Below, one piece after another: positions 1 through 26,636 of a stretch of DNA of 26,636 bases. The position numbers and the translations under genes are program-made. How positions within the stretch are numbered: position 1 is the first letter of the stretch; the number at the start of each line of letters is the position of its first letter. The notes beneath the pieces were generated by a model. That model made no database searches. It was given only the letters and a program-made list of their open reading frames with translations, and was not told the DNA's origin. The stretch comes from Selaginella moellendorffii (lineage: Eukaryota; Plantae; Lycopodiophyta). The DNA lies in assembly GCF_000143415.4 (NCBI RefSeq), contig NW_003314414.1, forward strand, positions 57,482-84,117, read 5' to 3'.

Positions 1-1257
1 GTATGTCTCAGCCATCCTGTGCATCTCCTGTAGGCTCGTATGCATCTCACCTTGATCATCCTTGAGCCCGAACATTGGCGGGGACGTAACTCTTGCTTTT
101 ATGGACTTGTAAAACTCTTTGTTTAGCGCATTCTCACTAATATGCCATTTGAGGTGCCCCGACCTTATAAACGCCTCCATTTTTTCCGCTTCCAGGGTGA
201 AAAGTTGGGCTTTGGTTCTTGCTAGCTGAGTTCTCAGTGACGTATCCAGCGGGTCCAACCTGATCAATCTCTTAATGGCTTCAATATTTCTTCTTATTGC
301 TTGCACTTTTTTGAAAACTTTTCTTCGCTTGTTCTGTGTCTTTTTCCGGATTTCATTGGCTATCTCAATTGTGAACTTGTGCAGATCTCCTCCTTCTTGC
401 TGATTCCATCTTTCTTTTATATGGTCATTCATTTTCCCGTCCTCGAAGTTTTTCCGCGATATTGGTGCAGGCCTCTTTGTTCCCCACCTCTTTAAGATGG
501 GAAGCGTCAAAGCCACCGAATTATGATCTGAGAAGTCTCTGTATCCCGTTGTTATATCTAATTTTCCACTATTCCGACACAGTTCGGGTGATATATAAAA
601 CCGGTCCAGTCTTCGTTGAATTCCCTGTTGTTGGTGCTCTTGCCATGTGAACCTTGGCTGGTGTTGTACAAACCCTGGGATGTTGTATGTATCTTCTAGC
701 CCCATCGCTAGCACTAGTTGTGCCCACATTGCTCTTTCCCTGCTTGTCCTTTTGTCTCTCATTTCTCCCCCATCTTTGTCTAGCTCCTCTTCCACAAAGT
801 TGAAGTCTCCCGTGACCATCCATGTTGAGGGTTGTGGAGGTATTCGGTGTACCAATTCATTCCAGAAATCTGCTCTTTCAGAGGAGCTTCCTGCTGGTGC
901 ATACACATTCAGGAGGCCTACTAGCATGTCTCCTATCTTGAACTGGACACACTGTGCTCTACCTGGTACCAGTATTGCATGATCTTCAACCAAAGATTCC
1001 CACGTGCCTTTTACCACTATTAATGTGCCTCCACTGCATGATACTGCCGGATTCCAAAAATATTTCCCTTTCGTAAACTTATAAACTTGATCCATTCTTG
1101 AGAGCCTATGCTCTTGCACACACAAGAAATCAAAACATTGCGTCACACCTTCTACCTGTCTAAGATACTGTCTAAATTTCGTCTTTTTGTTATTCAGTGC
1201 TGATCTCTCCTTCTTCAGGCCTCCCACGTTCCACGTTCTCACGTTGATGTTAACCAT
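1..1257 (-). CDS. ORF2 N-terminal part (APE endonuclease domain), family A copy 1, runs off the window
   Basis: ATG at 1257 (MVNINVRTWNVGG...). Matches the N-terminus of the 7451-11884 ORF, which carries TWNV, QEH, NVYAP, GDFNF, RLDRFY and SDH motifs. Confidence 0.93.
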   Translation of the reverse strand, partial: MVNINVRTWNVGGLKKERSALNNKKTKFRQYLRQVEGVTQCFDFLCVQEHRLSRMDQVYKFTKGKYFWNPAVSCSGGTLIVVKGTWESLVEDHAILVPGRAQCVQFKIGDMLVGLLNVYAPAGSSSERADFWNELVHRIPPQPSTWMVTGDFNFVEEELDKDGGEMRDKRTSRERAMWAQLVLAMGLEDTYNIPGFVQHQPRFTWQEHQQQGIQRRLDRFYISPELCRNSGKLDITTGYRDFSDHNSVALTLPILKRWGTKRPAPISRKNFEDGKMNDHIKERWNQQEGGDLHKFTIEIANEIRKKTQNKRRKVFKKVQAIRRNIEAIKRLIRLDPLDTSLRTQLARTKAQLFTLEAEKMEAFIRSGHLKWHISENALNKEFYKSIKARVTSPPMFGLKDDQGEMHTSLQEMHRMAETY

Positions 1258-4200
1258 TTCTGAATCCTCGGGCGCTGCCAAGACGCTGTCTCTCCACCCA
1301 ATGGTATGGTCCCATTGCTCGAAGTGGCCATGCGAACGGGATTCTCGCAGCTGCCTGCCGTCTTGGGCCCGCTTTCCCCCCTTTTTNNNNNNNNNNNNNN
1401 NNNNNNNNNNNNNNNNNNNNNNNNNNNNNNNNNNNNNNNNNNNNNNNNNNNNNNNNNNNNNNNNNNNNNNNNNNNNNNNNNNNNNNTCCCCCAGGAACTT
1501 GGGAGGGTTCGTTCCACTGACGTATAGCTCAATTTCGCAAACTGCTCTTCTCGGGGGGGTGAATCCTGGCGGACAGTTTCCTCTTGCAAAGTCCTCCGTT
1601 CTGCCTGATCTTGAGCGTGACTGTTGTTGTTGTTCCACTGGCCCCGGTACCCTCTGTGTAGCCTGCTGTGGTGGCATTTCACCTTTATCTTGGACCATCT
1701 CTACTTCTGTGTCAGGTTCCTTTGCCTCCCCCACGGCTTGTCCTTCGAACCGTCTTCCTGTCGGCCTCCATTCTTTCCCTCGCGAAGCCCCCGACTGTGC
1801 TTTTTCCTGCTTGGCTGCTGTTGATTGCTCCCCTTGTCCCTCCTCCTTCTGTCCTTTGGTTCGAGGCTTCTTGCTTTCGCCACTGGAGGCTGCTTTCTCT
1901 GTTGTTTCCCTTTCCCCTCTGGCTCCACGTTTCTTGCCTTCCGATCCACTGTTTGCTTTCTGTCGGTCCTCTCCTGTTTCCTGCATTCCCCCCACACTTG
2001 CTCCTCTGGCCAAACAGTGTTTTCCAATGTGTCCCGTGCGCCAGCAAATAATGCATACACTCGGGTTTGGTAGCAGCATAACCCGAATCCTTCTTGGCCC
2101 TTGCCCCTTCCCTGGCTTGAGTTCTATCTCGAAGGGGATGTGAACTTCTTTCGGAATCCTGACTTTGACCGTGACTCTGTCTCCCACTGGCATTCCTTCC
2201 ATCCTTATGAACGTAGCAAACTGCCTCAGTATTGTCGCCAGGATCTTGTCTTCGGCCAGTGCCACGTCCATACCTTGTAGCTCAAAGTTCACAATCACAG
2301 ATGGGGGGAGTAGCATCCTTTTTTTCTGGGGCGTGAAATTGTTGTGATATGATCTGAAGAAGAGCTGAAAGTCTAACTGTGCGTACGCATCCACTCGCAG
2401 CAACTTGTGCCGAGCTCTCTCGTCCTTGATGACCACATTATAGCACTTTTCTCCCAGGTCCTTCACATCTTCTGCTAAAACCGTGACCAACATGTCGTGA
2501 TATGCCAGCGCTGCGCATACCCAGTCTGATACTAAAAAACCTGCCGGGACTGCTCCTTCCACTATTACATGTATGGTTTCCTCCGCTCTTCTAGCTTGCA
2601 ACTTGTTTAGCTCCTCCATGAATTCTTCCTGGTCTACTTCCAAGACATCGTTTGCCGGTCCGAATGGCATTCTCGTAGGCTTCCTTGGTGGCATTATCTC
2701 CTCGATCTTTACTGGAGGTGGCCCAAATGGGACTATGGGAGCATCCGGACATACTGACATTTTCGAATACTGTGGTAAAACCTTCGGGTATCCCATTTCC
2801 GGCTCTCGCTTCCCTTCCGGGGATATCACCACCTCCGGCACGAGTTCCTCCTGTATCCCTCTTGATGACGATGCTTCCCACTGTCTTTCCTCGTCCAACT
2901 TCCCTTTTCCCTTGTCCTCCCTCATTCTGTCATGAAGTTCTTGTCCCAACGGAGCTTCGTATGTTCGCGCCGCCTGTCCCATTCCGTCCGATCTCTCCTG
3001 TCTGGCTTCCTTTTCTTGCCTTTCCTTTACGGCCTTCTCCTTTTCCCTTTCAGCTTCTTCTTCCAGTAGCCTTTTTGCTGCCTCTTCTGCCAAGCGTCTA
3101 GCTTCTTGCTCTTTTCGCGCGTTGGCTTCCCTGATTGCCTTGAAGCAGGGGGGGCCCTTCTCCAGCGGGCAGCACGTCTTGATTCTTCGCTTAATCCCGG
3201 TTGGGGATCCTACCGCCGCTTCCTTCCCACTGGCTTCCTTTTCTGCCCTTGCCTCTGCGTTTTCCTCCCCGACTCCTGGCGATTCGTTGGTGGGGTTTCT
3301 TCTAGGCGCTCTCGTGAGTGGGGTTTCCTCTTCCTCACTTGCATCCTCTTTTCCCTTGTTTTCCACATTGGCTGGAGAGACTTCTCCTACCAGCGTTTCT
3401 TCTGGATCTAGTACCTCTGGAAGCTGCACACCCCTGGCTCTCCCTCCTGCAGTGCTCATCCTCGCCGTTGTCCTTGCTCGTGGCATTTTTCCCCCAGTGT
3501 CTTCCTCTCTTTTTTTTCCTTCTGATTCTAGCGTTCCTTTCTTTCCCTCCCTCTCCTTTTCCCCCTTTTCCCACCCTTCCGTTCCCTCCCCTTCTTCCAC
3601 TTCCCACTTTCCTTTCGGAGATTTTTCCCCCTTGCCTTTCCTTTCCCTTTCGCTTACCGCTTTGCTTTTGTCTTCACGCTGGCCCTCGTCTTTTACCGAA
3701 AACAATGCCCTCCGGATTGACAAGTCCCCTTTAAATAGTGCTGACCCTGGCTGCCACATGTCATTCCGCCATTTGCTGCCCGCTCCTCCACGTTTTTCTT
3801 CCCCCTTTCCTGTCCACGTTGATAGCGCACACGATTGTTTTCTTGGATTCTTCGGCTTCTCCTCGGACATGACCCCGCCACACGTCTCTTCCTTGGATTT
3901 TCTGCATGGATTTTCGCCCCATGCATCTCCACGTGTCGCCTTGTCCTTCATCCCCTCCTTTCCGACCGTGACCTGCTCGGTCTCTTTAATTCCCACTGGC
4001 TGCGTGGTGATGACGTTGTTACTGTCCTCGTTTTTCTCCCGATTTGCTACGATCTTGACAGTTATTCCGCCTTTCCCCCATATTAACTCCTCCCTTGGTT
4101 TTCCCGCACCCGCATTCATTCGCCGTCTAGCCGTTGTCTCGGGATTCCGGCCGCTCCCAAATCCCCCCATCTTGGTCCGCCGCATGTCCACCATCTCCTC

Positions 4201-4266
4201 CGTCCCTTCTTCTCCTCTCGGTCGCATCCTAGCCGTCCAGAGCAGCGGTTTTTTGCCTTTGAACAT
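1250..4266 (-). CDS. ORF1 (nucleic-acid-binding, CCHC knuckle), family A copy 1, interrupted by an assembly gap
   Basis: Homologous to 11877-14936, with ATG at 4266 and TAA at 1250-1252. The knuckle reads CIICWRTGHIGKHC here. It is absent from the ORF track, most likely because the 100-N gap joins it in frame to ORF2, which runs off the edge. Confidence 0.85.
1387..1486. other. Scaffold gap (100 N)
   Basis: Run of exactly 100 N. Together with 40 unmatched bases it replaces about 183 bp present in copy 2 (11974-12156). Confidence 0.99.
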
Positions 4267-5242
4267 CTTGATCTTTGCTTCAAGCTTTGCACTTCCTTTC
4301 TTGGGCGTTGCTCTGGCCAGCGAGCTTGGTTTTCCAACTCAAGTGGAGCTTCCCTCTTGCCCAATTACTTCTGCTCAAGATCTTGGTTGCTTAGAGCTTT
4401 TGAACTTTCAGACACAAGTTCCAAGTTCAAACTGATTTCAGTCGGCTAGCCCAGTTTTGCTGTGCCCAGAATCCCCCCGACTAGTACTCCAGATCATTGC
4501 CTTATTGCGACCGTTCCTCTTATCCTCCCAGCGCGCGCTCTTTCTTTTTCAGTGCATGCAGTGGAGAGTGCTTGGGGGGTTTTTGAGACTTTTCACTTAG
4601 CTTCTTATAGCCCGGCGATCTTACTCCTCTCTGGCCTGTTCCCCCGAGGACCGAAAGGACTCTCTTACAAGCCAATACTGTCAGCCGAGGGGGGGCCAGA
4701 AAGGATGTCGTTCGGAGCCATTCCAAAACTTGAGTTACGAGCCAAAAAATGCACGACGGTGGTGATTCAGTGGGATGCTTTTGATTCTTTTTTCTTTTTT
4801 CTAGCGCTTTGCGGCTGGAGGAGAGGCTTCGCTTCCAGCTTTGATCTTTAGCCTTTGTCTGGTGACCTCTTAGCTGAAAAAAACCGGGCCACCGACTTGA
4901 AATCAGCTTGGACCACACTGCGAGCTCTATCCACCCAGTCTCTTGCTGTAACTTGCGCGAGTTGCTCACACCCAGCGAAGAACCAAACTCACTGCCCAGC
5001 CACACTCAGAGCCATCGTGCTTCTGCCTGGAGCTTCCAGATCTATTCTACCAGCCAATGCAAAAAACCCTCTCGAATCTGGCTGCAGCCGAGAAGACCCA
5101 ACAGCGCGTCTCACTGCCGTCCAGCGCCAGTGCCACACTCAAGCGTCCACTCCACTCTCAGCCTGTGGCTGCGCTTCTCTCTTCTTGCCTTAGTGCCTTC
5201 CCTCTCCTCTCCGCCTTCACTCGTCATTCTCTCTTCTCTTCT

Positions 5243-5258
5243 TCTAGTCCGACTTTGT
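5243..5258 (+). repeat. Target site / TSD motif TCTAGTCCGACTTTGT (LSU rDNA-like)
   Basis: Lies exactly between the 5' end of A1 and the 3' end of C, and recurs at all four junctions. Confidence 0.93.
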
Positions 5259-5372
5259 TAAACAGGGCTTTTATTCACCAGAAAACCAAAACTGGGCTGA
5301 GTTTCGTTAAGGCACGAAATCAGCAAAGAGCCGCGACAGAAAGTTTCGTCGTGCACGAAACCAACAAAGAGC
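5259..5372 (-). promoter_or_regulatory. 3'-terminal RNA structure of C: two copies of the conserved stem-loop plus a putative pseudoknot
   Basis: Element-sense GUUUCGU-GCACG-ACGAAAC (5343-5361) and CUGAUUUCGU-GCCUUA-ACGAAAcUCAG (5297-5323), each preceded by GCUCUUUG. Confidence 0.7.
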
Positions 5373-6493
5373 AAGAGGGGGGGTCTTCACGTGGAGGTAC
5401 TTTGTAGAAAACTCGCCGCAGACTTTTATCTCAATCCATGGTCTTGAGTAGAGCCAGCAGAAAGATGATGGGAGAAGCTCCAAGTACCAAGGAACCAGCC
5501 TTTACGACTTGAGAGTGGAGTTACTGAAGAACTTGTCTCTCTTGATCCCTTAAGGAGAGACTCCAGGTGCCGAAGGGGTCAGTGCTGAGAGGGGAGTTGC
5601 TCACAAGCTTGACGGCCCATGCTGTCGCGATTGTGGAATCCAGAACCATCTGTCCAGTGGCGTCCACAATCACTCGTGAGTACTTGCCTCTCTTGATCCC
5701 CTCAAAGGGCATGCCTTACATCGTCTTTGTGCCTCGTCGAGTCTCTGAACTGAAGTGTATCTGACCATAAGTATTTCTTGAAACCTTGGAGGTACCCCAT
5801 GGACGTACACCGCTCTCCCTTGGTTTCTTCTTGTGCACTTTCATATCTGCCCCCCGCTGTAAACTGCTGTTGATCGGACTCTACTGAGACTCAGTACCAT
5901 CTTGTCACTCGTCGGTGTCGAGTTCTCTTGTTGGTGCCTTTGCTCTGGTCCATGTCTTTATCTTGAGTGTCTTCGTAGCTTCTACCAAAGAACTCATTCA
6001 TCGTGACCACACTAAACGCCCTCAATTGTCGTAGAGAAGCTGGATGTTTGCCCAAGTGTTGGTGACGAAATCCTCCTCACGTGGGGAGCCTTGTTTCCAA
6101 ACCTCCACCATTGTCGACCTTGAAGACGCCCACAAAGAGAACCACCTCCTTGATAAGTCATCAAGATCGACAAACTTGAAGCAAGGTCGCGTACGACACC
6201 ATCACTTCAAGCTCCCAATCCTTGGCAAGAATCACCTTACAAGTCTTGGGGATGAAGAGGATCTCCTTCACCTTGCTTGAGCTCACCACTGTCCATGGAG
6301 CAGGCCTCCAGACCCCCAGAAAGAAAACCGTGGAGTAGCGAAGGACAAGTCTAAGCAACAAGCCGAGGACTCAAATACTTAGATCTCCTTCCTCCACCGT
6401 TTGATCTTCCTGAAATTCTGAAGGCCGACTCTCCATATTCAGCTCCAGCTTCTCACCGACGTGATCTCGAAACGAGTGCATCAGCCAGGAGAA

Positions 6494-7165
6494 CCAGCCG
6501 CTCAAACTTACACTGGACTTCACTTGCTTGAACCATGAAACTTGAGCAGACATATCTTGCAGCCCAGCCGTTAGATCTTCATGAAACCTTGTAGACGCAA
6601 TCTCCCTAGTGTCTTCTAGCTTCTCACCAGAGCGATTTTCGGTCCGATGTCGCCTAAAGCAGCCACAGCCGACCCATTCTCGCCTCAAACCTTAGCCGCC
6701 CAAGTGCCTAGGGTCACTTGTATCTTCCCAGATCTTTATCCAAACGGCCTGCAGCTAGTGACAGAGTGTCTTTGCCTTGTAGCACCCCAGCCGTGGAGTA
6801 GAAAAGAGAAGCCCAGCCAGTGATGAGTGCCAGCCGCTCAAACTTCCACTGGCCCACACTTGCTTGAACCGTGAACTTCAAGCAGACGGATCTCGCAACC
6901 CAGCCGTTAGATCTTCTTGAAATCTTGTAGGTGCAGTCTCCCTGGTGTCTTCTAGCTTCTCACCGGAGCGATCTCAGATCAGATGCCGCATATAGCAGTC
7001 GCAGCCGACCCTTGCTCACCCCGAACCCTAGCCGCCGACATGACTAGGGCCACTTCGATCTTCTCGGATTTCAATCCAAACGGCCTGCAGATAGCGACAG
7101 AGTGTTGCCTTGCATTGTAGGAGCCCAGCCGTGGATAGAACAGAGAAGACCAGCCAGTGATGAGA
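6494..7165. repeat. Diverged tandem duplication, two ~336-bp units (6494-6829, 6830-7165)
   Basis: Both units start ccagccgctcaaactt and end ccagccagtgatgag. They share cagccgttagatcttc, gtgtcttctagcttctcacc and atccaaacggcctgcag. Confidence 0.92.
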
Positions 7166-7339
7166 GCAAAACAAACGATTTTTCGATGAAGTGCCCAATA
7201 TTGCTTGTGCCTTCGATTCTTGAGGGGGCGCCTTGATTCAGCAGCTCACAGGACTTCTACACTACCTCCTCTACACTAGATCTGGCCACAGAAGTCGACT
7301 CTCAATGCGCCATCTCCTCCTCTCCGTCTAGGGTTTTTT

Positions 7340-7370
7340 CTCTAGTCGGACTTTTGTAGTCCGACTTTGT
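7340..7370 (+). repeat. Double target motif (variant ctctagtcggacttttgt plus tagtccgactttgt)
   Basis: Seen directly between the 5' end of C and the 3' end of A2. Confidence 0.9.
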
Positions 7371-7450
7371 TAAACGGGGCCTTTTATTTTCCAGCAAAAA
7401 ACCAAAAAACTGGGCATGGTTTCGTTGGGCACAAAACCAGCAAAGAGCCT
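7371..7450 (-). promoter_or_regulatory. Structured 3' UTR of family A (stem-loop, putative pseudoknot, AATAAA)
   Basis: Element-sense UGGUUUUGU-GCCCA-ACGAAACCA (9 bp with one G-U pair), then CCAG-U6-GGUUUUUU-G-CUGG-AAAAU-AAAAGGCC. Confidence 0.7.
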
Positions 7451-10400
7451 TTATCTAGAGGAGCCTACAATGGAAGTACCTACAGAAAGGGGGGTTGCTC
7501 GTGAACTGGCGCCCGAAGGTCTTCCTAGATGTGTCACCTGGAACCATTCGTCTGGCGGTGTCCACATCCATTCCCGAGTACCTGCCTCCCCTTGCTTCCA
7601 CAAGAAATGCCAGATCTGCGCTTCTTTTTTTGCTTTTTCTGGGCCATTTCTCCCTCCTCTTTTTTCCAGTTGTAGGACACGGGCTGCTGCTGCAGTTATC
7701 ATTCTAGTCCACACCCGTGACGCCACCACCCTTGGTCCTTCTTCCCTATCATTAAAGATTCTGTTGCACCGGGCTTTCCATACTTCCCACATTGTAATTC
7801 CTCGCAGTAGGTCCACTATCTCTGTTGGGATTCCTTCTATGTCTGTTCGAGTTGTGTTAAGCTGGTCAAACCGCGGTGCCCCTTCTTCTCTTGATGTCCA
7901 TTTCCAAGAGTCTGTTCCATTTCGCATTCCTGCGGCAGCTTCGCCCCATACTGCCGCTCCATACGTGAGGCACACTTGTCTCTGGGAGTGTTGTTGCAGC
8001 AACCAGCACGTGCTTCTCCACACGTCTTGTGCGCTTTCACATTCCCATAATATGTGCCTTTGTGTCTCCCTCGCTCCACATTTGTCGCATGTTTGGTCCA
8101 CGAGGTGTATGTTCCTTTTTGATGGTAGCCTGTCTTGCATTGTCAACCACATGAAGTATCTTGTTTTTGCTGCCCAACGTCCTTTCCATAACTCTTTCAA
8201 TATCTCCTGCTGTGTCTTGTCCTGTATGTTGGCTCGTTTCATCCTTGATACCAGTAGTGAGTCACTGCGCGGCCGAATGAGCTTTCTCCCCAATCTTGTT
8301 TCGTAGGCAAAGAATTCTTCCTTTTTCCTTCCCCGCCAATTCCATTCCGTTGGATCCCAGGCCAGCTCGCTTAATTTTTGTTGTCTGAACCAGTACATCC
8401 TAGCTACCTGGCCTTCCGTTATCTTCGGGTCCATTGATGCTGTTTTCTTATCTATCCGTATAACACGTATCGGCTCTGTTCGTGACATGTCCGGTCGTAG
8501 GCTCTCCTTGGGCACTTTGTATGGTAATAGTCTCCCAGCCACCCCGACTTCGAACACATAACATTTCGTCTGGTCTTGAGTTGCCGTGTATATCACCTTT
8601 TCCTCGGCTATCCACCAGGCTGGTGTCGTTTCTCTGACTTCCTTAATGCTCTGTTTGCATTTCCCTTGTGCTTCTTCAAAGGCTGTTTCGAACTTTTTCA
8701 GCCTGTGTGCCGAGATTTCCAGCCCATAGAAAACCTTTAGTCTATCTCTGTTCATTTCTGTTTCCCCCGCTTTTATCATTGAGTCAGCTTCTGCAAATGT
8801 TCTCATCCCAGCACTGTGAAGGTCCCGGCATACTTTGTCTATTCCTTTGTCCGCAGTTTCCCCCAAACATTTCCCCTTATATTGAAATAGCTTATTAAGA
8901 AATATTGGTTGTCGATCCAACTCATAAGTGTTTGTCGGTTTTCTTTTTTCCAACTTGCTCTTGAATTCCTTCCACAATCTGAACAGTTTCCCAGAGAATG
9001 TATTTGGTTTTGGCATTTTCAGTGCGCCTTCCATGAACAGCCACCTTTCATCTTTTTCCCAGTTTTGCCTCGTGTGTTCTAGTCTGTCCGGAATGACTTT
9101 AAGCAGTTGATGGCGTAGTAGGAGTTTCCATGGTTGGTTTCCGGGCATGTTCATTCGGTGAAAGATTTTGAATAGCAGCGCCTTGCATTGTTCCTCTATA
9201 TCTATAATGTTTATCCCCCCATCCTGTTTTGCTCTTGTGACCGAGCTCCATCCAACCTTTGCCCCTCCTCTTGATACTGTTGCTTGGCCCTTCCATACAT
9301 ATGTCCTGATGAGCTTGTTCATTTCTTTTAGTGTTTTCTTGTCCAAGTTCCATGATGCCGCCAGGAACCAGATTGCTCCTAGCACTATATTATTCGCCAC
9401 TACACATCTTGCCGAGAAGGACAGCTTCCGTGATGCCCAAAATTTCAGTTGATCTCGAAGCTTTTCGACCGCCTTCTGATTCTGCGGGAGGGGGTCGTAT
9501 GCCCGGCCTATTTGGAACCCCAAGTATCTTGTTGTTTCTCCTTGTTTCAGCCACTTAAAATCCCACTCTCTCCCCCAATTTGGCGGGTCAGAGCTTGGCA
9601 GCCATATTCCCACCGATTTTCCCCAGTTTATTCGTGAGCCAGCTGCCAGGTTGAAGAAGTCCAAGTCCTTCTTGACCTTGCTCATGTTTTCCGGGGAGCC
9701 TGTCGTGATGATTCCTGTGTCATCCGCGAAGGCACTGGATTTCAACTGCCTTTCCTCTGTCCCTGCCAGGTCTTGTAGTGAGTCTCTGCACCCAGGCAAT
9801 ACCAGCCCTTCCGGTCCGTCCATCCTTGCCAGATAATGTGCTAAAGCATCGGCCACGAACAGGAACAAAAACGGGGCTAATGGACACCCTTGTCTTACTG
9901 ACCGTTGGAGCTTGATCGTGTTCCCTACTGTCCCGTTTATTGTGACCTTGCTTGATGCGCCTTGGTATAAGGTGGCCGTCCATCCTATAAACTCTTCAAG
10001 GATGCCGATCTTCCTCATTGTCGTTTGCAGGAATTCCCAGTCTACTCTATCATATGCCTTCTCGTAATCCAGGAGTATTATGGCCATCTCTAATCCTTGG
10101 TCTTTGACTTGTTCTTGTGTGAGCAACACTGTCAATATGTTGTCTACCAGTTGTCTTCCTTCCACAAACCCATTCTGGGTGTCATGTATCGTTTCTGGCA
10201 ATAACGGCCTTAATCTCTTGGCTAGCGCCTTGGCTACTATCTTGTATAGTGTATTTAGCATCGATATCGGTCTCCAGTTCTTGAGTAGAGATGCATCCCC
10301 TCCTTTTTTGGGAATGAGCGCAATTATTCCATCTATGGCTCCTGGGGGCCATTGTCCCGTTCTCATCACCTCCTTCCATGTGTCCAACACTACTGGCCCC

Positions 10401-15899: not shown

Positions 15900-15960
15900 C
15901 TCTAGTCCGACTCTTCTTCTCTCTAGTCCGACTTTGTGAAAAATTCTAGTCCGACTTTGT
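15900..15960 (+). repeat. Triple target motif (15900-15912 partial; 15921-15941 CTCTAGTCCGACTTTGTGAAA; 15945-15960)
   Basis: Seen directly between the 5' end of A2 and the 3' end of B. Confidence 0.93.
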
Positions 15961-16047
15961 CAATGGGGTTTTAATTAGTTTATCCTCTACAAACCATAGA
16001 GTCCGATTTCGACATGCTCGAAACCGGAAAAGAGCTCTTCAAGATTT
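15961..16047 (-). promoter_or_regulatory. Structured 3' UTR of family B
   Basis: Element-sense GCUCUUUU-CCGGUUUCGA-GCAUG-UCGAAAUCGG (10 bp with one G-U pair), then CUCUA-U-GGUUU-G-UAGAG...AAACC. Confidence 0.68.
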
Positions 16048-19000
16048 TTAGGGGGGGTGGGACGAGGGGGACAAAGTAGAACTGGTACTCGAGCCCGTGA
16101 TGTCTGATGTCCAAGCTACCAAAGTTCCTGGTGTGGAACTCTGTCGACTCGGGGAGGTACACGTGCCTTCGTTCCTGAACATGTGCTGCCAAATCCATAT
16201 TGGTGGCTTCCACGTCCATTCTTCTTCTCCAGCCTCGCTTCTTCCTCTAAAAAACGGCCACAGCTTCTTCTCCTTCACTATCTTCCCTTCCTCGCCTCGT
16301 TTGATCAGCGTGTCCAGGCGAGCTGCGAGTGAGACGATCAGTCTGGACCAAACCTTTGAGATAGTTGCTCGAGCCGAGGGGTTCATGTCCTCGAACAGCC
16401 TGGCGCAGCGAGCCTTCCATATCTCTGCTAGTGTGCATCCCCGAAGCGCATCGAAGAGCTCCTGGTGGAGATGCGTAATGTGTGTCCGAGTTTGGTTGAG
16501 TTGATCAAAGTGTGGGGCCTCGTTGTGTCTCCACTTCCATGCATCAGGATTCTTTGTTTTTCCCTGGATGAAGCTACCCCAGAGCGCTGATTCGTATGTG
16601 ATTGCAGCTCCTCCGGTTGACGTTCGTTTAAGTACCGCTGCTGCACCTTCCCATACTTCCTGTGCTGCCGGACATTCCCATAAGATGTGTCGCTGTGTTT
16701 CTGTGGCGCCACAGGTCTTGCAGGCTGTGTTCGGAAGATGAATGGCAACCAGAGAGGGAAGACGTTCTTGCTGGGCCAGCCACATGAAGTATCGGTTCTT
16801 AGCTGACCAGCGCCCCTTCCAGATCTTGTTGATGCAGTGTGAGTGGTTCCTGGAACTGATCTGTTGGGCCTTTGCTTTCCGGATGAGGGAGGATCGAGTC
16901 GGCACCCTGATCAGTTTGCGGCCTAGCTTGGTCTCATACTGGAAGAAGTCCTTGCACGTGGTTCCCTTCCAATGCCACTCTGCAGGATCCCACTTGAGTT
17001 CATCCAGGGTTTGTTGGCGGAACCAGTAGAGGCGAGCATATTGGTTTTCTGGTACCGATGGATCAACGTTGGCAGCTTTTTTCTCCATTTGAATCACTCT
17101 GATCGGTTTAGCTCTGCTCATGTCGGGGAGGTCCTTGTACTCGGGGGTAATGATGGGGTACAAGCGTCCAGCCTGTCCTGCCTCAAATACTAGTCCCGAT
17201 GCCATGTTGGGGAGGGTGCATACGATCGATTCATCCACCTTCCACCAACGATGGTGCTGATCTTCTTGCAGGTTTAGTTGTTCGAGGCATGCGTGTTTGG
17301 CTGCTAAAAAGGCTGTCTGGAATTTACGCATCCTGTGTTCCGAGATGATTAATCCATAGAAAGCTCTGATTCGGTCGCGGTTGTGGGCCGTCTGGTTGGG
17401 CTGGATCATGGTGTCTGCCTCTGCAAAGGTTCTCATCCCTGCTCTGTGCAGGTCTCTGCATGTCTGGTCCAGGCCGCGATCCTCTGAAGCTCCGAGCGTT
17501 TTACCCTGGACAGCGAAGAGTTTGCTCAGGAAAATTGGCTGCCGGTCCAGTTGTTCTTTGGTACGAGGTGGTTTACGTTCCAGCTTGCACTTGAATTGCC
17601 TCCAGAGCTTGAACAGCTTTCCTGAGAATGTGTGAGCCTTTGTCATTTTGAGTTTGGTATCTGAAAAGAGCCATTGTTCGTCTGACGCCCAGTTTTGTCT
17701 GGTGTGCTCGTTCCTGTTCGGGAGGACTTTCAAAAATTGTGCTCGCAGCAGTATTCTCCATAGTTGGTGGCCAGGCATGAGCATCCTTGTGAAAATCTTG
17801 AAGAGAAGAGCCTTGCATTGTTCTTCGATGTCAATGATATTGAGGCCCCCTTCGTGCTTCGGAAGTGTTACTGACCGCCAGTTGACCTTTGCTCCACCAC
17901 GCGACACGCAGGAGGAGCCTTTCCAGACATAGGTACGAATGAGTTGGTTCATTTCCTGGATCGTTCGCCTGTCCATGTTCCAGCATGCTGCCAGGAACCA
18001 GATTGCTCCAAGCAGGATGCTGTTAGCCACCACGCAGCGTGCTGAGAACGATAGTTTTCTGCTCGCCCAGAACTTGAGTTGATCCCTTAGTTTTGTTACA
18101 GCTTTTTGGTTCTGGGGTTCTGGATCATATTGGCGTCCCACTTGAAATCCAAGGTAGCGGGTGGTCTCCTCCGTGTCCAGCCATTTGAAACCCAGCGCCG
18201 TGCCCCATGTTGGAGGTCTGCCGGGGGGGAGCCATAGTCCTACCGATTTGTGCCAGTTTATTTTCGATCCCATGGCCTCATTGAAAAAATCCAGATCACT
18301 TTTGACGTTTGAGAGGTTCTCCGGTGATCCCTCCACGATCAGGCTTGTGTCATCTGCAAAGGCTGAGGATAGGAGGTCCTCCTTTGAGGCTTCGTTCATG
18401 TCCTGAAGCGTGGCACCACAGCCTGGAAGGGGCATACCTTTTGGACCATGTGGTCGGGCGAGGTAGTAGGCCAGAGCATCCGCAACAAACAGGAACAGGT
18501 ATGGTGCGAGGGGGCATCCTTGGCGGACTGATCTTTCAAGTTTGAAGGACTGTCCCATGGTTCCATTGATTGTAACCCTGCTCAATGCCGAGTGGTACAG
18601 GGATGCTGTCCATTCCACGAACTGCAGAGGAACTCCTTGCTTGATCATTATGGCCTGGAGAACTTTCCAATCCACCCGGTCGTAAGCTTTTTCAAAGTCC
18701 AGGAGAATGATTGCAATCTGCTCTATCGTGTCTTTGGTGTGTTCTTGCGCCAGCAGCACTGTTAGGAGATTGTCCACGATTTGTCTGCCGTCTACGAAAC
18801 CGTTCTGCGTCTCCTTGATTGTTTCTGGGAGCAGAGGCTTGAGGCGTGAGGCCAAGGCTTTTGCTACGATCTTGTACATGGTGTTCAGCATAGAGATGGG
18901 CCTCCAGTTCTTGAGGTGGGACATATCTCCTTTTTTTGGTATCAGAGCAATGATCCCATCCGTAGCTCCTTCCGGCCACTTCCCAGCTCGCATGGTTTCT

Positions 19001-20508
19001 TGCCACATCTTGAGAACTTCTGGTTCGATCCAGTCCCAGTTTTGTTTGTAAAAGGCTGGTGGCATGCCGTCCTCCGCTGGCATCTTGTCGTCCTTGAGGT
19101 CATCCAGGGCGTCCTTTAATTCTCGCAGCGTGAAAGGTCTCATTACTCCGGTGTTCATTGCTGGGGTGTACTTGGTCGGGATATGTTCCAGCACTCTTTC
19201 AAGTTTCTCTTGCCTGACCTCATCCCATGGTTCCTCCTTGAAAAGCTGCGAGTAGTAGTGTTCTGCCATGTTGTGCATGTCATCGATCTCTGTGTGCAGT
19301 TGCCCTTGTTCGTCCTTCAATCCGAACATTGGTGGGGAGATCACTTTAGATCTTATGGATCGATAGAACTCCCTGTTTAGCGCGAGTTCACTTGCGTGCC
19401 ATCTAATGTGTCCTGCTTTTAGGAAGGCTTCCATCTTGTCGGCCTCTATCCTTTCCTGTTGGCGCTTAACCTGGATTTTTTGAGCTTGTAGCCAGGGGTC
19501 GTCCGGGTTGCTGCGAAGGTCAGTGTTGATCGAGGCCAGGACACTCCGAACCTTTTGGACTGTGTTAAAGACACCTCTCCTATCTTTCCGGATCTTGGTT
19601 CGAGCCTTTTGAGCGATTTGAAGGGTGAAGGAGTGTAGGTTCCCCTTGTGTTTCTCCCATTGCTCGTGTGCCCAGTTATTGTTGGCTTGCTCCTCAAAGA
19701 ACTTCTTGGGTATGGCAACTGGCTTCCTTGGACCTCTCGATCTTCGAAAGGGAAGTGTGAGTCTAATTGGATGGTGGTCCGAGAAGTCCGTGTAGGTGTT
19801 GTCGATGTCCAACTTCCCCCCTTGCATGCACAGGTCCATGGTGAGGTAGAAGCGGTCCAGACGACGTTGTATGCCTCTGCGTTGACGTTCTCGCCATGTG
19901 AAACGTGGTTCGTGTGTCACAAACCCCGGGATCTCGTAAGCGTCGCAGGTGCCAATTTGTAAGAGGAATGAGTTCCATGCAAGGCGTTCCGCACGTGTAC
20001 GTCTATCCTGGATTATGCCTCCCTGTTTGTCCTCCTCGTGATCCACGAAATTGAAGTCTCCAGCCAGGATCCAGTCATCGATTCCAGAGGGAAGACGATG
20101 CTGCAGAACTCGGAAGAAGTGTGCTCGTGAGGTGGAGCGGGAAGCCGGGGCGTAGATGTTCAACAGGCCTATGGTTCGGGCATTTACTTTTAACACTATC
20201 ATGTGAGCACGTCCAGGGATTAGGATCTGGTGCGAGGTGCTGAGGGATTGCCATGGTCCTTTGGCGATGATGAGGGTTCCTCCTCGCCTTCCAACTGCAG
20301 GGTTCCAGAAGTGTTCGCCTTGTGAAAACTTAAAGATTGTCTGGTGTTCTTGCATTCTATGCTCCTGGAAACAGAAAAAGTCACACTTTCCTATCACTCC
20401 TTCTAACTGGCGAAGGTATTGTCGTAGCCTCGCCTTCTTGTCATTCCATAGCACTCCGTCTTTACTAATGCCTCCTACATTCCATGACAGCACACTGAGA
20501 TCAGTCAT
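16048..20508 (-). CDS. ORF2: APE endonuclease + reverse transcriptase + CCHC zinc finger (family B, 1486 aa)
   Basis: Motifs SWNV, QEH, NIYAP, GDFNF, RLDRFY, SDH; NWRPISMLN, DFEKAYDRVDW, RQGCPLAP, AFADD, RYLG; CKTCGATETQRHILWEC. Confidence 0.97.
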   Translation of the reverse strand: MTDLSVLSWNVGGISKDGVLWNDKKARLRQYLRQLEGVIGKCDFFCFQEHRMQEHQTIFKFSQGEHFWNPAVGRRGGTLIIAKGPWQSLSTSHQILIPGRAHMIVLKVNARTIGLLNIYAPASRSTSRAHFFRVLQHRLPSGIDDWILAGDFNFVDHEEDKQGGIIQDRRTRAERLAWNSFLLQIGTCDAYEIPGFVTHEPRFTWRERQRRGIQRRLDRFYLTMDLCMQGGKLDIDNTYTDFSDHHPIRLTLPFRRSRGPRKPVAIPKKFFEEQANNNWAHEQWEKHKGNLHSFTLQIAQKARTKIRKDRRGVFNTVQKVRSVLASINTDLRSNPDDPWLQAQKIQVKRQQERIEADKMEAFLKAGHIRWHASELALNREFYRSIRSKVISPPMFGLKDEQGQLHTEIDDMHNMAEHYYSQLFKEEPWDEVRQEKLERVLEHIPTKYTPAMNTGVMRPFTLRELKDALDDLKDDKMPAEDGMPPAFYKQNWDWIEPEVLKMWQETMRAGKWPEGATDGIIALIPKKGDMSHLKNWRPISMLNTMYKIVAKALASRLKPLLPETIKETQNGFVDGRQIVDNLLTVLLAQEHTKDTIEQIAIILLDFEKAYDRVDWKVLQAIMIKQGVPLQFVEWTASLYHSALSRVTINGTMGQSFKLERSVRQGCPLAPYLFLFVADALAYYLARPHGPKGMPLPGCGATLQDMNEASKEDLLSSAFADDTSLIVEGSPENLSNVKSDLDFFNEAMGSKINWHKSVGLWLPPGRPPTWGTALGFKWLDTEETTRYLGFQVGRQYDPEPQNQKAVTKLRDQLKFWASRKLSFSARCVVANSILLGAIWFLAACWNMDRRTIQEMNQLIRTYVWKGSSCVSRGGAKVNWRSVTLPKHEGGLNIIDIEEQCKALLFKIFTRMLMPGHQLWRILLRAQFLKVLPNRNEHTRQNWASDEQWLFSDTKLKMTKAHTFSGKLFKLWRQFKCKLERKPPRTKEQLDRQPIFLSKLFAVQGKTLGASEDRGLDQTCRDLHRAGMRTFAEADTMIQPNQTAHNRDRIRAFYGLIISEHRMRKFQTAFLAAKHACLEQLNLQEDQHHRWWKVDESIVCTLPNMASGLVFEAGQAGRLYPIITPEYKDLPDMSRAKPIRVIQMEKKAANVDPSVPENQYARLYWFRQQTLDELKWDPAEWHWKGTTCKDFFQYETKLGRKLIRVPTRSSLIRKAKAQQISSRNHSHCINKIWKGRWSAKNRYFMWLAQQERLPSLVAIHLPNTACKTCGATETQRHILWECPAAQEVWEGAAAVLKRTSTGGAAITYESALWGSFIQGKTKNPDAWKWRHNEAPHFDQLNQTRTHITHLHQELFDALRGCTLAEIWKARCARLFEDMNPSARATISKVWSRLIVSLAARLDTLIKRGEEGKIVKEKKLWPFFRGRSEAGEEEWTWKPPIWIWQHMFRNEGTCTSPSRQSSTPGTLVAWTSDITGSSTSSTLSPSSHPP

Positions 20509-23500
20509 TGGCCTTGTTTGTAGTGATCCGATCGCGTTCCACCCATGAGAATTCGCGATCTCTCCCTTCTCTCGCGGGGATGACGCCGCTTTTGGTGAGA
20601 AGGGCTGCGTGCAGCTCCATGTTGGTGCCCACGATTGTGGCCTTGTCTACTTCCACATGGTACCTAAGATCCTTGATTACCTCGGACGCTTCCAGAAAGC
20701 TGTGTACTCCATTCTCTGGGAGCTGATCACGCGCCATGTGGAATGTGGGGGTGACATATCCGACCGGAGGGCCACTCCAGAGTGCTAGGTACTTCCGGGG
20801 ACGTGTGTTGCTTACATGGAGCCACAGGTTGACTTTGAGTCGCGTGAACCGTCGGGAGGAGGACGCTCGCCCTCGCGGCACCTGGTCCTCTGATGGGGAT
20901 CTCTCCACTCGTGCTCTTTCCGGGGACGGGGAGCGTTGGACTGTGTGTTGTCCACCCCGCTGGTCGCTTGTCCTCTCAGGTGAAGCTTGTCCGTCCGTCG
21001 GTGTTTCTTCCCTGCGCATTGACACTCTGTCGGACTGTCTCCTAGCTGTTCCTCCTTGAGCCGAAGGGCTTCTCCTTCTTTTTCCCCGGTCCTGCATCGG
21101 CTTAGAGGGTGTCGCTGCTGCTGGGGGTGTCGTCCTAGATTCCTGGATATGGATCGGGTGCACTTTCCCCATGATCCGGATCTTATTCGGGATTGGCGCC
21201 TTTCCAGTGTACAGAACGTGGATGAGTTGGTCCCCTGACTCCTCCCTTGTCGCCCGTTTCCCTAGGTACTGAGCGAAGCCCTCCACCATCATTGCCAGGA
21301 ACACCGGGGTGTTGTCTGTCTCGCACAGGTCCTCGACGAGTAGATCCAGCTCCATTGTTGGGCGGTGAACCAAGTCCTTCTGGCTCGGGGAGAATCCTGG
21401 CGGAAACTTGTAGAAGAACAACTCGTGTGTTGGTCTCGTCACCCTCTGCTTTAGGACCAGGGCTCGCCGGTTTTTCTCCGTGCTCACCTCCACGCTGTAG
21501 CAGTTCCGGCCAAGGAACGTGACTGGTCTCCCCCGGAACGACACTCCTGCCTCTTTGAAACCATCCTCGAGCCCTTCCAGTGCTGCTTGCCGGGCTGGTT
21601 TGTTCCCTTCAAAGATTGCCAGGATCAAGTTCTTGGCTGCCTTGGCTTGACGTTCCTGCAGTTCCATGAGGACCTCGTTCGCCTCCACTTGTAGCTCTCC
21701 TGGGACTGGTGCCGTGACATCCGACATTGCCGGTGCAGCAGCTGAGTGGGGTGAAACGGTCTTCTTCACGTCCATGTCCAACTCTTCCACCCTTGTCCAT
21801 CCGAGATAGAGTACGTCCGACTCCTTCCTCTTCTTGAGCGGGACGGCTGGAATTGCTTTCTCCTTGGTGGTCCCGGTCGAAGCTCTCGGAGCTGGTGTTT
21901 CTGGGACCTTTGTGAGCGCTGGGGAGGTCTCTTCGATCTGATCCCCCTCCGAGTCCCCCTCTTTCCCCTGTCTCTCCTCTGTCACCGCTTGGATGACTCA
22001 TTCCCTCTGCTGTGTGTCCATGAAAAGCGCGCTCAAACCCGGCGAGGCAGAGTGTGAGTCAGGCAGGGTCTGTTGTGGCGTGTTCTCCAGCATTTCGTCC
22101 GCATACTTGCCAATTCCCTCCAAAGCTGATATCGATGGGATCCTTTCAACTGTGAGCGTCCTGGCCGGTGGTGTTGCGTTCAGCGGGGGGGTGATTGTTT
22201 GCTTGGAGGATGAGGCGTCTGAAGCTCCCTTTGGTTTTTTGCCCCCCGTTGCGGTCTGGTTCTTCTTCTTTGTGATCTTGACTGTATCGGCGGATGAGGA
22301 GGGAGCAGCTCGAGTCAGTTCTGGTTCTGGTTCCACAGCTTCGTTGTCCTTCGGGGGCGGCGGTGGGCGCTGCTTGAGCTTGATCGAGAGTCTCGTCCCC
22401 GTGCTTCTCGTTTCTGGTCGAGGCTCCGCCGTAGGTCTCTCCTCATTGTCAGGGGTGTTCTGAGTCGTGTCTGTGCGAGGGGGCTCTTCCAGTTCGTCTT
22501 CCAGTGGTGGACCTCGCTTTCGCATGTTCTTTGTACGCGGCATTTCCTTCTTTGTTCCGGTCCTGTGTTCAGTAAAGAGTTCACGGATCAACGCTACTCC
22601 ACGAGGGTGCTGTGGTGATTCTGCTGAGGTACTGCTGGCAGTTTTTTGAGTCGAAGAGGGGGGTGTATGGGGGGAGGCGTGTGGGGGGTCAAGCCTTGGG
22701 GAAGAAAGGGGAGAGAGATCGACGTGTGATCGCGAGGGTGGAGCGGAGACAAATCGGGGAGCTAGGGGATTGGAAGGAGAACCGACCTCTTGGTTGTTGG
22801 CGTGATGGTCCTCTCCTTTTCTCTTTGCTCTGCTTGCTTTCTTCCGCTCTCCAGTCGCTCTCGAGTTCGATTGAACTTTTCCGAGCAGGGGCAAGTTTAG
22901 GGTTGTTGCTACTGCTCTTGGCGGGGGAGCACGTGGATGCGTGTGATTGGGCGTGCTCCGTCTTAAGTTCGCCTTGGATTTTGGTGATATAACGTGATCT
23001 TGGCGATTCTCCCGCCGTACGTTGTGTTGGTTCGAGGACTGCCCTCTTGATGATTGTCGGGGTGATGGCGACGTGGGGGGGGGAATGTTCCCTGGTGGCA
23101 CGTGGGGGATGGTGACATCATTTTTCTTTTCCTTCGTCGTCTCTCCCTTCTGTTCTGGACCGTGTGATCTTGTCTCAGTTGATCTTAGCCGTGGCTGGGA
23201 CTTGTGCGTGGGGAGGGCCACCGATCCATTGGTTGGGGTTTGCTTCTCGCGATTCAATGGTTGTGATGCTGATCGGCCCGGTACGTGTACGGTCGTCCTT
23301 GTGCGTGGTTTTTTGGTGTTGGTCGCTGTCTGCTCCGGGCCGTTGGATCTTTTTTCGGACGATCCTGACTGTGCTTGGGACTTAGCCATTTCCTGCATGG
23401 GCTTCGTCTGAGCGGGAAGAAATTTTTGATCGGGCAGATCATGGATTCTTGGGGAGGGATGCTCCCGGCCGGGTGAAAAACGATCTGGAGGTGGAACAAT

Positions 23501-23587
23501 TAATCGAAGTCCATACCTGTGTGCCCCTTGCCTTGACGTCTTTTGCAGTTCTGAGGTCCAGGGGAGGACCACGTTTTGCCGGTTCAT
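20501..23587 (-). pseudogene. Family B ORF1 (~1028 codons) split by one in-frame TGA at 21998-22000
   Basis: ORFs 21998-23587 and 20501-21985 are in the same frame: ...CAG AGG GAA TGA GTC ATC CAA GCG GTG ACA.... The combined length matches family A ORF1 and the C-half aligns with it. Confidence 0.8.
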
Positions 23588-24378
23588 GGGTGCTGGAGAG
23601 GACGATCTTTGTGGGTCATTGAGAGCTGTCCCAAGTGCTGCTGGGTATCAATCCAAGTCCATCAGACTGTCCGTGTTCGTCCTTTGCTGCTGCGCCCGCG
23701 AAGTGACCTTCTAGTGTCCTCGTGTTCTAAGGACCAGAACTTGGAGCGATTGGCACTTGTTTTGCTTCTCGGGTGCTTCTGTCCCTTTCCAGTGCTCCAG
23801 GCGTCCCTTCCTCCAGTCAGGCGTGGCCCCCTTCTTGCTTTTGAATTTTTTTTTTTTTTTTTTTCTTGGGGAAAGGGGGGGGGGGGGAGCGGGACTTCTG
23901 CCACTGATCGGTCCGCTGTTGAGTCCTCTTTTTGATCAACCAGGAGGGGCCAAAGAAGATTGTGGACCGTGAAGCCAGCAATCCTATTGCGACTGGTGAT
24001 CCTGGAGCGATCTCTTCACTACCCAAATGGATCCGCGTGGACCTTCTGTTGGGTGGAGCGAGCTTGAACCAGGGGATTCTTGGCGGTGTCAGTCAGCAGC
24101 ACTGTGGGGGGATTAGAACAATGGGGAAGAGATCGGGATCGTTGCAAGGGAAGCGCCTGACCGGCGGGGAGCCGTGGAGAACCGGGACCCTTGCACAACC
24201 AGTACCGAGATCGACAAGTGGGTTCCGCACACTCTAGAGTTCGGCCGTGAACCAAGGCGCCTAGTAGCAGATCCATGGCGAGCAGCTGGGGAGCGAACCA
24301 GGATGCCGTGGGAAGTGGGGGGGATGAGAGCGCCGGAACTTTGAGGAGCGCCTTGCACCTAGGGTTTCCATCCTCTCT

Positions 24379-24395
24379 CTCTAGTCCGACTTTGT
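24379..24395 (+). repeat. Target site / TSD motif CTCTAGTCCGACTTTGT
   Basis: Lies between the 5' end of B and the 3' end of A3. Confidence 0.93.
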
Positions 24396-26636
24396 TAAAC
24401 AGGGCCTTTTATTTTCCAGCAAAAAACCAAAAAACTGGGCATGGTTTCGTTGGGCACAAAACCAGCAAAGAGCCTTTATCTAGAGGAGCCTACAATGGAA
24501 GTACCTACAGAAAGGGGGGTTGCTCGTGAACTGGCGCCCGAAGGTCTTCCTAGATGCGTCACCTGGAACCATTCGTCCGGCGGTGTCCACATCCATTCCC
24601 GAGTACCTGCCTCCCCTTGCTTCCACAAGAAATGCCAGATCTGCGCTTCTTTTTTTGCTTTTTCTGGGCCATTTCTCCCTCCTCTTTTTTCCAGTTGTAG
24701 GACACGGGCTGCTGCTGCAGTTATCATTCTAGTCCACACCCGTGACGCCACCACCCTTGGTCCTTCTTCCCTGTCATTAAAGATTCTGTTGCACCGGGCT
24801 TTCCATACTTCCCACATTGTAATTCCTCGCAGTAGGTCCACTATCTCTGTTGGGATTCCTTCTATGTCTGTTCGAGTTGTGTTAAGCTGGTCAAACCGCG
24901 GTGCCCCTTCTTCTCTTGATGTCCATTTCCAAGAGTCTGTTCCATTTCGCATTCCTGCGGCAGCTTCGCCCCATACTGCCGCTCCATACGTGAGGCACAC
25001 TTGTCTCTGGGAGTGTTGTTGCAGCAACCAGCACGTGCTTCTCCACACGTCTTGTGCGCTTTCACATTCCCATAATATGTGCCTTTGTGTCTCCCTCGCT
25101 CCACATTTGTCGCATGTTTGGTCCACGAGGTGTATGTTCCTTTTTGATGGTAGCCTGTCTTGCATTGTCAACCACATGAAGTATCTTGTTTTTGCTGCCC
25201 AACGTCCTTTCCATAACTCTTTCAATATCTCCTGCTGTGTCTTGTCCTGTATGTTGGCTCGTTTCATCCTTGATACCAGTAGTGAGTCACTGCGCGGCCG
25301 AATGAGCTTTCTCCCCAATCTTGTTTCGTAGGCAAAGAATTCTTCCTTTTTCCTTCCCCGCCAATTCCATTCCGTTGGATCCCAGGCCAGCTCGCTTAAT
25401 TTTTGTTGTCTGAACCAGTACATCCTAGCTACCTGGCCTTCCGTTATCTTCGGGTCCATTGATGCTGTTTTCTTATCTATCCGTATAACACGTATCGGCT
25501 CTGTTCGTGACATGTCCGGTCGTAGGCTCTCCTTGGGCACTTTGTATGGTAATAGTCTCCCAGCCACCCCGACTTCGAACACATAACATTTCGTCTGGTC
25601 TTGAGTTGCCGTGTATATCACCTTTTCCTCGGCTATCCACCAGGCTGGTGTCGTTTCTCTGACTTCCTTAATGCTCTGTTTGCATTTCCCTTGTGCTTCT
25701 TCAAAGGCTGTTTCGAACTTTTTCAGCCTGTGTGCCGAGATTTCCAGCCCATAGAAAACCTTTAGTCTATCTCTGTTCATTTCTGTTTCCCCCGCTTTTA
25801 TCATTGAGTCAGCTTCTGCAAATGTTCTCATCCCAGCACTGTGAAGGTCCCGGCATACTTTGTCTATTCCTCTGTCCGCAGTTTCCCCCAAACATTTCCC
25901 CTTATATTGAAATAGCTTATTAAGAAATATTGGTTGTCGATCCAACTCATAAGTGTTTGTCGGTTTTCTTTTTTCCAACTTGCTCTTGAATTCCTTCCAC
26001 AATCTGAACAGTTTCCCAGAGAATGTATTTGGTTTTGGCATTTTCAGTGTGCCTTCCATGAACAGCCACCTTTCATCTTTTTCCCAGTTTTGCCTCGTGT
26101 GTTCTAGTCTGTCCGGAATGACTTTAAGCAGTTGATGGCGTAGTAGGAGTTTCCATGGTTGGTTTCCGGGCATGTTCATTCGGTGAAAGATTTTGAATAG
26201 CAGCGCCTTGCATTGTTCCTCTATATCTATAATGTTTATCCCCCCATCCTGTTTTGCTCTTGTGACCGAGCTCCATCCAACCTTTGCCCCTCCTCTTGAT
26301 ACTGTTGCTTGGCCCTTCCATACATATGTCCTGATGAGCTTGTTCATTTCTTTTAGTGTTTTCTTGTCCAAGTTCCATGATGCTGCCAGGAACCAGATTG
26401 CTCCTAGCACTATATTATTCGCCACTACACATCTTGCCGAGAAGGACAGCTTCCGTGATGCCCAAAATTTCAGTTGATCTCGAAGCTTTTCGACCGCCTT
26501 CTGATTCTGCGGGAGGGGGTCGTATGCCCGGCCTATTTGGAACCCCAAGTATCTTGTTGTTTCTCCTTGTTTCAGCCACTTAAAATCCCACTCTCTCCCC
26601 CAATTTGGCGGGTCAGAACTTGGCAGCCATATTCCC
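24396..26636 (-). mobile_element. Family A copy 3 (3' portion, continues beyond the window)
   Basis: Near-identical to 7371-9611 (offset 17025), with the same precise 3' end. Confidence 0.96.
24476..26636 (-). CDS. ORF2 C-terminal part (end of RT region, CCHC finger), family A copy 3
   Basis: Translation nearly identical to the copy 2 C-terminus (differences include EGTLK vs EGALK and ADRG vs ADKG). Confidence 0.95.
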   Translation of the reverse strand, partial: GIWLPSSDPPNWGREWDFKWLKQGETTRYLGFQIGRAYDPLPQNQKAVEKLRDQLKFWASRKLSFSARCVVANNIVLGAIWFLAASWNLDKKTLKEMNKLIRTYVWKGQATVSRGGAKVGWSSVTRAKQDGGINIIDIEEQCKALLFKIFHRMNMPGNQPWKLLLRHQLLKVIPDRLEHTRQNWEKDERWLFMEGTLKMPKPNTFSGKLFRLWKEFKSKLEKRKPTNTYELDRQPIFLNKLFQYKGKCLGETADRGIDKVCRDLHSAGMRTFAEADSMIKAGETEMNRDRLKVFYGLEISAHRLKKFETAFEEAQGKCKQSIKEVRETTPAWWIAEEKVIYTATQDQTKCYVFEVGVAGRLLPYKVPKESLRPDMSRTEPIRVIRIDKKTASMDPKITEGQVARMYWFRQQKLSELAWDPTEWNWRGRKKEEFFAYETRLGRKLIRPRSDSLLVSRMKRANIQDKTQQEILKELWKGRWAAKTRYFMWLTMQDRLPSKRNIHLVDQTCDKCGARETQRHILWECESAQDVWRSTCWLLQQHSQRQVCLTYGAAVWGEAAAGMRNGTDSWKWTSREEGAPRFDQLNTTRTDIEGIPTEIVDLLRGITMWEVWKARCNRIFNDREEGPRVVASRVWTRMITAAAARVLQLEKRGGRNGPEKAKKEAQIWHFLWKQGEAGTREWMWTPPDEWFQVTHLGRPSGASSRATPLSVGTSIVGSSR

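Follow-up and report, generated by a model that had tools for sequence, protein, structure and literature searches.

A stretch of 26,636 nucleotides (nt) from the genome of the lycophyte Selaginella moellendorffii (contig NW_003314414.1, positions 57,482 to 84,117), hereafter the window, contains a head-to-tail array of long interspersed nuclear elements (LINEs). The array probably grew by repeated use of target site duplications (TSDs). The elements responsible would form a guild of L1-type LINEs specific to 26S ribosomal DNA (rDNA), in which families A and B are autonomous and family C is a passenger with an A-like 3' end; unequal exchange would have contributed in addition. Self-comparison and reading of the junctions divide the window into five collinear pieces. 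They belong to three types, and all lie on the minus strand. In the sense of the elements, from high to low coordinates, their order is A3, B, A2, C, A1. A measures about 8.5 kb and B about 8.4 kb; C is non-coding and measures 2.1 kb. No element is interrupted, as judged against sister copies or relatives at other loci. The original prediction of five elements of three types, in one orientation and none nested, was for the most part borne out, and the array is a real, well-defined structure.

A 15-nt motif, ACAAAGTCGGACTAG on the element strand, is present at every junction in the window. Four copies are exact and a fifth differs at one position; all five are on the minus strand, and 100 shuffles of the sequence gave an expectation of zero. 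The 3' ends of the elements before the motif are invariant: ...GTTTA in A and C, and ...CATTG in B. The 3' ends of five A copies, seven B copies and one C copy meet the motif at the same nucleotide. All copies end at one nucleotide of the rRNA gene, which is the behaviour of a site-specific rDNA LINE. On the plus strand, TTTGT is followed by TAAA (A and C) or CAAT (B), as had been predicted. Neighbouring elements are separated by 15-17 nt of rDNA at every junction, both in the window and at three related loci (L002-L004).

The source of the motif is evident at a further locus, L001 (S. moellendorffii assembly GCA_000143415.2). Here the 3' end of an A element adjoins the motif, which runs unbroken into antisense eukaryotic large subunit (LSU) rRNA; the flank matches Rfam model RF02543 with 528 bits over model positions 1891-2388. 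The motif is antisense plant 26S rDNA directly beside the insertion point. An Rfam search of the window gave no match, the motif being too short to score. In the L001 flank the insertion site is a few tens of nt from a stretch which we take to be the site of the insect element R1. The uninterrupted native site was sought by a pattern search of metagenome contigs in which the eight positions after TTTGT were left free. It was found in 36 environmental LSU contigs, 29 of which read ...CTAGTCCGACTTTGT GAAATGAC.... Since the native site reads GAAATGAC after TTTGT, the priming nick would fall between TTTGT and GAAA on the rRNA-sense strand, and the motif comprises the 15 nt nearest to it on the priming side. 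Of 13 junctions, 10 have the native A as the next base after the motif, and several read AG; the duplication is therefore 15-17 bp long, and mostly 16.

The junctions differ from one another in what follows the motif. Between A3 and B, the motif (24381-24395) is followed by the AG-rich start of B. The passage from B to A2 is the most elaborate: two exact motifs (15946-15960 and 15923-15937) enclose an 8-nt insert, AATTTTTC (15938-15945), and are followed by the 5' junction of A2 (15900-15922), which consists of AG-rich filler (15911-15922), a 9-nt partial motif (15902-15910) and AG, after which A begins. Between A2 and C (7342-7370), 14 nt of motif are followed by a degenerate second copy of 16 nt and then by C. 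Between C and A1, an exact motif (5244-5258) is followed by 15 nt of AG-rich filler (5229-5243), which is unlike the filler at the A2 junction, and then by A. The last four letters of the 8-nt insert are those of the native rDNA flank before the nick, and the insert may be the scar of an abortive insertion or of a template jump. The extra motif copies, like the insert, may have been left by abortive events or by template jumping at 5' junctions. The elements had been described as having no host DNA between them. This has to be amended, as each junction holds the 15-nt rDNA motif, along with AG-rich filler and partial or extra motif copies; the only host DNA between elements is this scrap of target.

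The target is most likely regenerated by the 15-17 bp TSD, and not mainly by element ends that imitate the rDNA flanks. After the nick, the native site reads GAAA, A and C read TAAA, and B reads CAAT; the common part is NAA only. This mimicry at the element ends is only suggestive and is statistically weak. NAA after the nick recalls the preference of L1 endonucleases for nicking between T-rich and A-rich sequence. As the main means by which targets are regenerated, flank mimicry was discarded: two or three bases are shared, and truncated copies lack the CTCT-like 5' side. The original prediction was that each insertion recreates a cleavable site, with the 5' ends supplying CTCT-like sequence. 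The shared target and the repeated insertion hold good; the means of regeneration would be the TSD, and CTCT-like 5' ends do not serve as a general basis because 5'-truncated copies supply none.

The most likely mechanism, by analogy, is the R1-type reuse of the target site duplication, with recombination as a second contributor. The element endonuclease would nick the rRNA-sense strand between TTTGT and GAAA, and the nicked 3' end would prime reverse transcription, which would place the elements antisense to the rRNA. Cleavage of the other strand 15-17 nt away would leave each insertion flanked by two copies of the motif. Each copy would retain the priming-side sequence, with NAA after the nick, and could presumably be cut again. 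A further element from any of the three families could then land beside the first, giving the succession element, motif, element, motif. Unequal exchange among near-identical copies would subsequently duplicate or reshuffle the units. The duplicated copy that is reused could be the 5' copy, the 3' copy or one inside an array. Reuse of a duplicated site is suggested by a variant shared between the two motifs around one insert at L003, and by the small scars between motif copies.

Evidence for serial insertion comes from the 5' sides of the elements. A1, A2 and the full-length A copy of L002 begin at the same nucleotide and have three different 5' junctions. An independent, Sanger-era assembly of S. 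moellendorffii contains similar mixed arrays with copies truncated to different extents at the 5' end. The L002 array reads B, A (654 nt), B (from position 4943) and A (full length); the L003 array reads A, B (281 nt) and B (from position 832). Truncated copies in these two arrays begin at the motif or at most 2 nt from it. At L003, the two motifs around the 281-nt B fragment share a rare T-to-C change, and their other changes are private. Such sharing is expected if a site that was already variant was duplicated on insertion, and it argues against a motif carried in by RNA. Contigs from a DNA run supply further junctions. In one, the motif of an A 3' end is followed at once by a C truncated at 6770; in another, an A 5' end comes after a different filler. 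Several of the insertion events are independent. The array thus has two features of a TSD-mediated array of the R1 type: neighbours are separated by the TSD and members are independent insertions, with one counter-example, a duplication at L004.

Several points weigh against stacking on TSDs as the origin of the array. None of the insertions observed has native rDNA on both sides, the native upstream flank being absent from the compared loci L001-L004, so that the duplication is deduced from junctions within arrays. The element ends resemble the native flanks in two or three bases only. The 26-kb order comes from one assembly which has a gap and contains 8.5-kb repeats that are 99.6% identical; only the junction between C and A1 is bridged by contigs of other runs. 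At L004 (2531-13286), two B copies that are 99.8% identical agree in their 5' truncation (position 1208), in an internal deletion of about 220 nt and in their junction. Recombination probably duplicated one unit here; alternatively, the pair may come from a deletion derivative that is itself mobile. On the first reading, recombination also builds such arrays. Exchange between A copies of different arrays could shuffle the order of elements as well, which makes a non-periodic order weak evidence on its own. That order had been put forward as an argument for serial insertion. Serial insertion is supported, by the junctions and truncations; the order alone would also be compatible with recombination.

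Recombination may be given the leading part. A small number of founding insertions, one for each family, would then have been followed mainly by unequal crossing-over or gene conversion in rDNA-linked arrays, possibly within a larger higher-order repeat. The L004 pair is what this account expects; the window A copies are mutually 98.7-99.6% identical, and the junction between C and A1 recurs without difference over 986 nt in the contigs of another study. The R1 array of D. melanogaster did arise by recombination (PMC5932611). However, the 5' junctions of A1 and A2 differ, no junction type recurs in the window, related arrays have many different truncation points, and the DNA run contains other junction types. 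We consider it unlikely that recombination played the main role. Stacking on TSDs, with recombination in second place, accords better with this diversity of junctions.

The order of elements could also be an artefact of assembling near-identical repeats. Besides the 8.5-kb repeats of 99.6% identity, there is a gap inside A1. The left piece of A1 (1-1346) is an internal part of A, covering the end of ORF1 and the N-terminal part of ORF2 (ORF, open reading frame); it runs off the start of the window, is 99.6% identical to A2 10628-11973, and its ORF2 frame is open throughout. The right piece (1487-5228) comprises the 5' untranslated region (UTR) and ORF1, with a full 5' end at 5228; it is 98.7% identical to A2 12157-15899, and ORF1 is open for 950 amino acids (aa) up to the gap. 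Each piece is collinear with A2. Between them lie 40 letters (1347-1386) and the assembly gap of Ns (1387-1486). The 40 letters have no match in A2, in any other A copy, elsewhere in the window or in L001-L004; the query aligned over its first 46-48 nt only, a portion consisting of A sequence. The corresponding A2 interval is 183 nt long, vs 40 letters and 100 N in the window. Given the unmatched letters and this discrepancy, A1 as a single element, and the ORF1 frame across the gap, are not established. The 40 letters could be an error at a contig end, or part of a rearrangement or nested insertion that the gap conceals.

This problem does not touch the four junctions, all of which lie to the right of the gap. 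Each junction in the window has its own filler, mixed arrays of the same kind occur in the independent Sanger-era assembly, and contigs from two other studies bridge the junction of C, motif and A1 (986 nt without difference in one case, 469 nt in the other). This comparison with other runs uses contigs and not raw long reads. It is nevertheless very improbable that the order in the window was created by assembly.

A and B have the coding capacity of autonomous L1-type LINEs. In both, ORF2 carries the Pfam domains Exo_endo_phos, RVT_1 and zf-RVT, that is, an APE-type endonuclease, a reverse transcriptase (RT) and a C-terminal zinc domain. It is preceded by a separate ORF1, which overlaps the start of ORF2 by 8 nt in A and B alike. 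The best solved relative of ORF2 is human L1 ORF2p (1e-41); R2 proteins follow at 1e-13 to 1e-15. Membership of the R1 clade was considered and rejected: the site and orientation differ from those of R1, and the domain set and best matches appear L1-like. A and B are 57% identical in ORF2 and only about 23% identical in the C-terminal half of ORF1. They are thus old, distinct lineages. The nearest proteins found outside Selaginella are at most 29% identical, and exact-product look-ups with the ORF2 products of A and B gave no match.

Every visible reading frame in A1, A2 and A3 is open. A2 (7371-15899) is a complete A element with ORF1 at 11877-14936 (1019 aa) and ORF2 at 7451-11884 (1477 aa from the first ATG). 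A3 (24396-26636) is the 3' part of an A element which runs off the end of the window; it is 99.6% identical to A2 7371-9611, and the C-terminal part of its ORF2 is open for 719 aa. B (15961-24380) has an intact ORF2 (16048-20508, 1486 aa). Its ORF1 (20501-23587) contains a single in-frame stop at 21998-22000 (minus strand), where the B relatives of L003 and L004 have a sense codon. No second full-length B was found among the B copies of the window and the related loci. The 5' ends had been called apparently complete. For A this is supported by the start nucleotide common to A1, A2 and the L002 copy, and for C by a distant relative at L004 which starts within about 10 nt of the C start.

C (5259-7341) has no ORF longer than 105 aa and contains an internal duplication of about 336 bp at 6494-7164. 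It shares only its last 100 nt or so with A, at 83-84% identity. The distant relative (L004 16384-17269) is about 60% identical, with conserved blocks, and sits after the 3' end of a B element and the motif, and so the passenger family must be an old one. The 3' UTRs of A (7385-7450), B (15990-16040) and C (5285-5335), all on the minus strand, have a common GCTCTTT box followed by a hairpin. The arms of the hairpin differ by family yet remain complementary. Both B (24359-24367) and C (7327-7335) have AAACCCTAG within about 20 nt of the 5' end on the minus strand. The sequence is similar to the telo-box motif of plant promoters; filler joined to the final four letters of the target motif would account for it equally well.

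Sequencing runs were compared as assembled contigs, and the depths given here are rough values per contig, not converted to copy numbers. In three runs guessed to be RNA, contigs of the C region (window 5238-7381) have depths of 10^3 to 10^4, vs 0-15 for the A sequence on either side (4300-5237 and 7382-8300). In the DNA run the relation between C and A is reversed. Adapter sequence follows at 7319 and 7326, some 15-22 nt inside the 5' end of C, and contigs extend from the 3' end of C across the motif into A1 with falling depth. C therefore appears to be a strongly transcribed element whose RNA starts at its own 5' end and in part reads through. In the DNA run, the 3' part of A (7382-8300) is two- to four-fold deeper than the 5' part (4300-5237), as would be expected if many genomic copies are 5'-truncated.

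The read-through contigs bear on another explanation, in which the array consists of concatemers made in single events. On reaching the 5' end of one RNA, RT would switch to the 3' end of a second RNA, itself extended by read-through into the motif, and the motif would be derived from RNA instead of being a TSD. RNAs that read through into the motif probably do exist, and the AG-rich filler and partial motifs at 5' junctions resemble the products of template jumps. A motif acquired in this way sits poorly with the fixed spacer of 15-17 nt between elements and with the clean joining of truncated copies to the motif, and the rare variant shared by two L003 motifs fits duplication of the target. 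The chance that the array arose as such concatemers appears slight. Within the framework of stacking on TSDs, the same RNAs may have another use. We tentatively propose that the guild's main landing pad is the duplicated sites inside arrays and not intact rRNA genes. A, B and the strongly transcribed C would multiply next to the rDNA, in a tract that consists of LINEs alone and extends itself, leaving functional rRNA genes untouched; motif-bearing read-through RNAs would guide precise priming. This proposal is possible rather than probable.

LINEs that home to rDNA and form tandem stacks are a classic animal system, represented by R1 and R2. It should be noted that the likeness of the window to tandem R1 arrays, already drawn in the original prediction, is apt (PMC2718515). 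In seven Drosophila species, tandem R1 copies are separated by a 14-bp duplication (Stage & Eickbush 2009, PMC2718515). The authors' explanation was that a new element inserts into the copy of the duplication that adjoins the 5' end of a resident R1, and cases include R1A upstream of R1B (PMC2718515). Double insertion followed by unequal exchange was generalised as a model by McGurk & Barbash (PMC5932611), and tandem R1 in Drosophila 28S genes was also reported by Roiha et al. 1981, as cited in PMC5932611. The Selaginella elements are likewise APE-type LINEs specific to one LSU rDNA site; head-to-tail copies are separated exactly by the TSD, and lineages mix. Re-insertion into the duplication with later expansion by unequal exchange would, by analogy, be a further common trait. 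Unlike R1, the Selaginella elements are L1-type (zf-RVT, with human L1 ORF2p as best solved relative), their host is a lycophyte, and three families mix, one of them a non-coding passenger. They also lie antisense to the rRNA and so cannot be co-transcribed with it.

Two other groups of LINEs show partial resemblance. Kojima and Fujiwara are said to have described, in 2004, sequence-specific LINEs of the L1/Tx1 group (Tx1L, Keno, Mutsu and others). The Selaginella elements have in common with the Tx1 group an L1-like domain set and a fixed target in a multicopy gene. We know of no plant member of that group, and of no LSU rDNA target. Telomeric or terminal LINE arrays (HeT-A/TART/TAHRE, Zepp, GilM/GilT) attach to chromosome ends or to each other's tails. 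They too are mixed-family, head-to-tail and LINE-only, and a likeness to them had been suggested. However, every Selaginella junction keeps the internal rDNA target. A telomeric origin was rejected, since there is no telomeric repeat in the window and the rDNA motif is present at every junction.

In Selaginella, the LSU rRNA gene is also the target of the PLE-X Penelope-like elements, which were called the first transposable elements (TEs) known to target 28S in plants and are the only plant TEs for which an LSU rRNA target has been reported (Craig et al. 2021, PMC8557442). PLE-X resembles the elements described here in genus and target gene. It belongs to a different retroelement class, without an endonuclease or APE domain, unlike the A and B LINEs. 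Given that PLE-X was called the first of its kind, the Selaginella LINEs appear undescribed, and literature searches found no description of an rDNA-specific LINE from Selaginella or any other plant.

Stacking by means of a duplicated landing site is thus known from insect R1 and is not described for plant LINEs. A guild of L1-type LINEs in a lycophyte would mean that a further LINE clade, in a different kingdom, independently evolved rDNA homing and array growth on a duplicated target. Two autonomous partners and one passenger make up a natural three-partner system. In it one can ask what an L1-type endonuclease needs for site specificity, and how TE arrays become satellite-like tracts next to nucleolar organisers. 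The mechanism itself is known from R1; what is new is that it occurs in a plant, in an L1-type clade, at an antisense site and with three families mixed.

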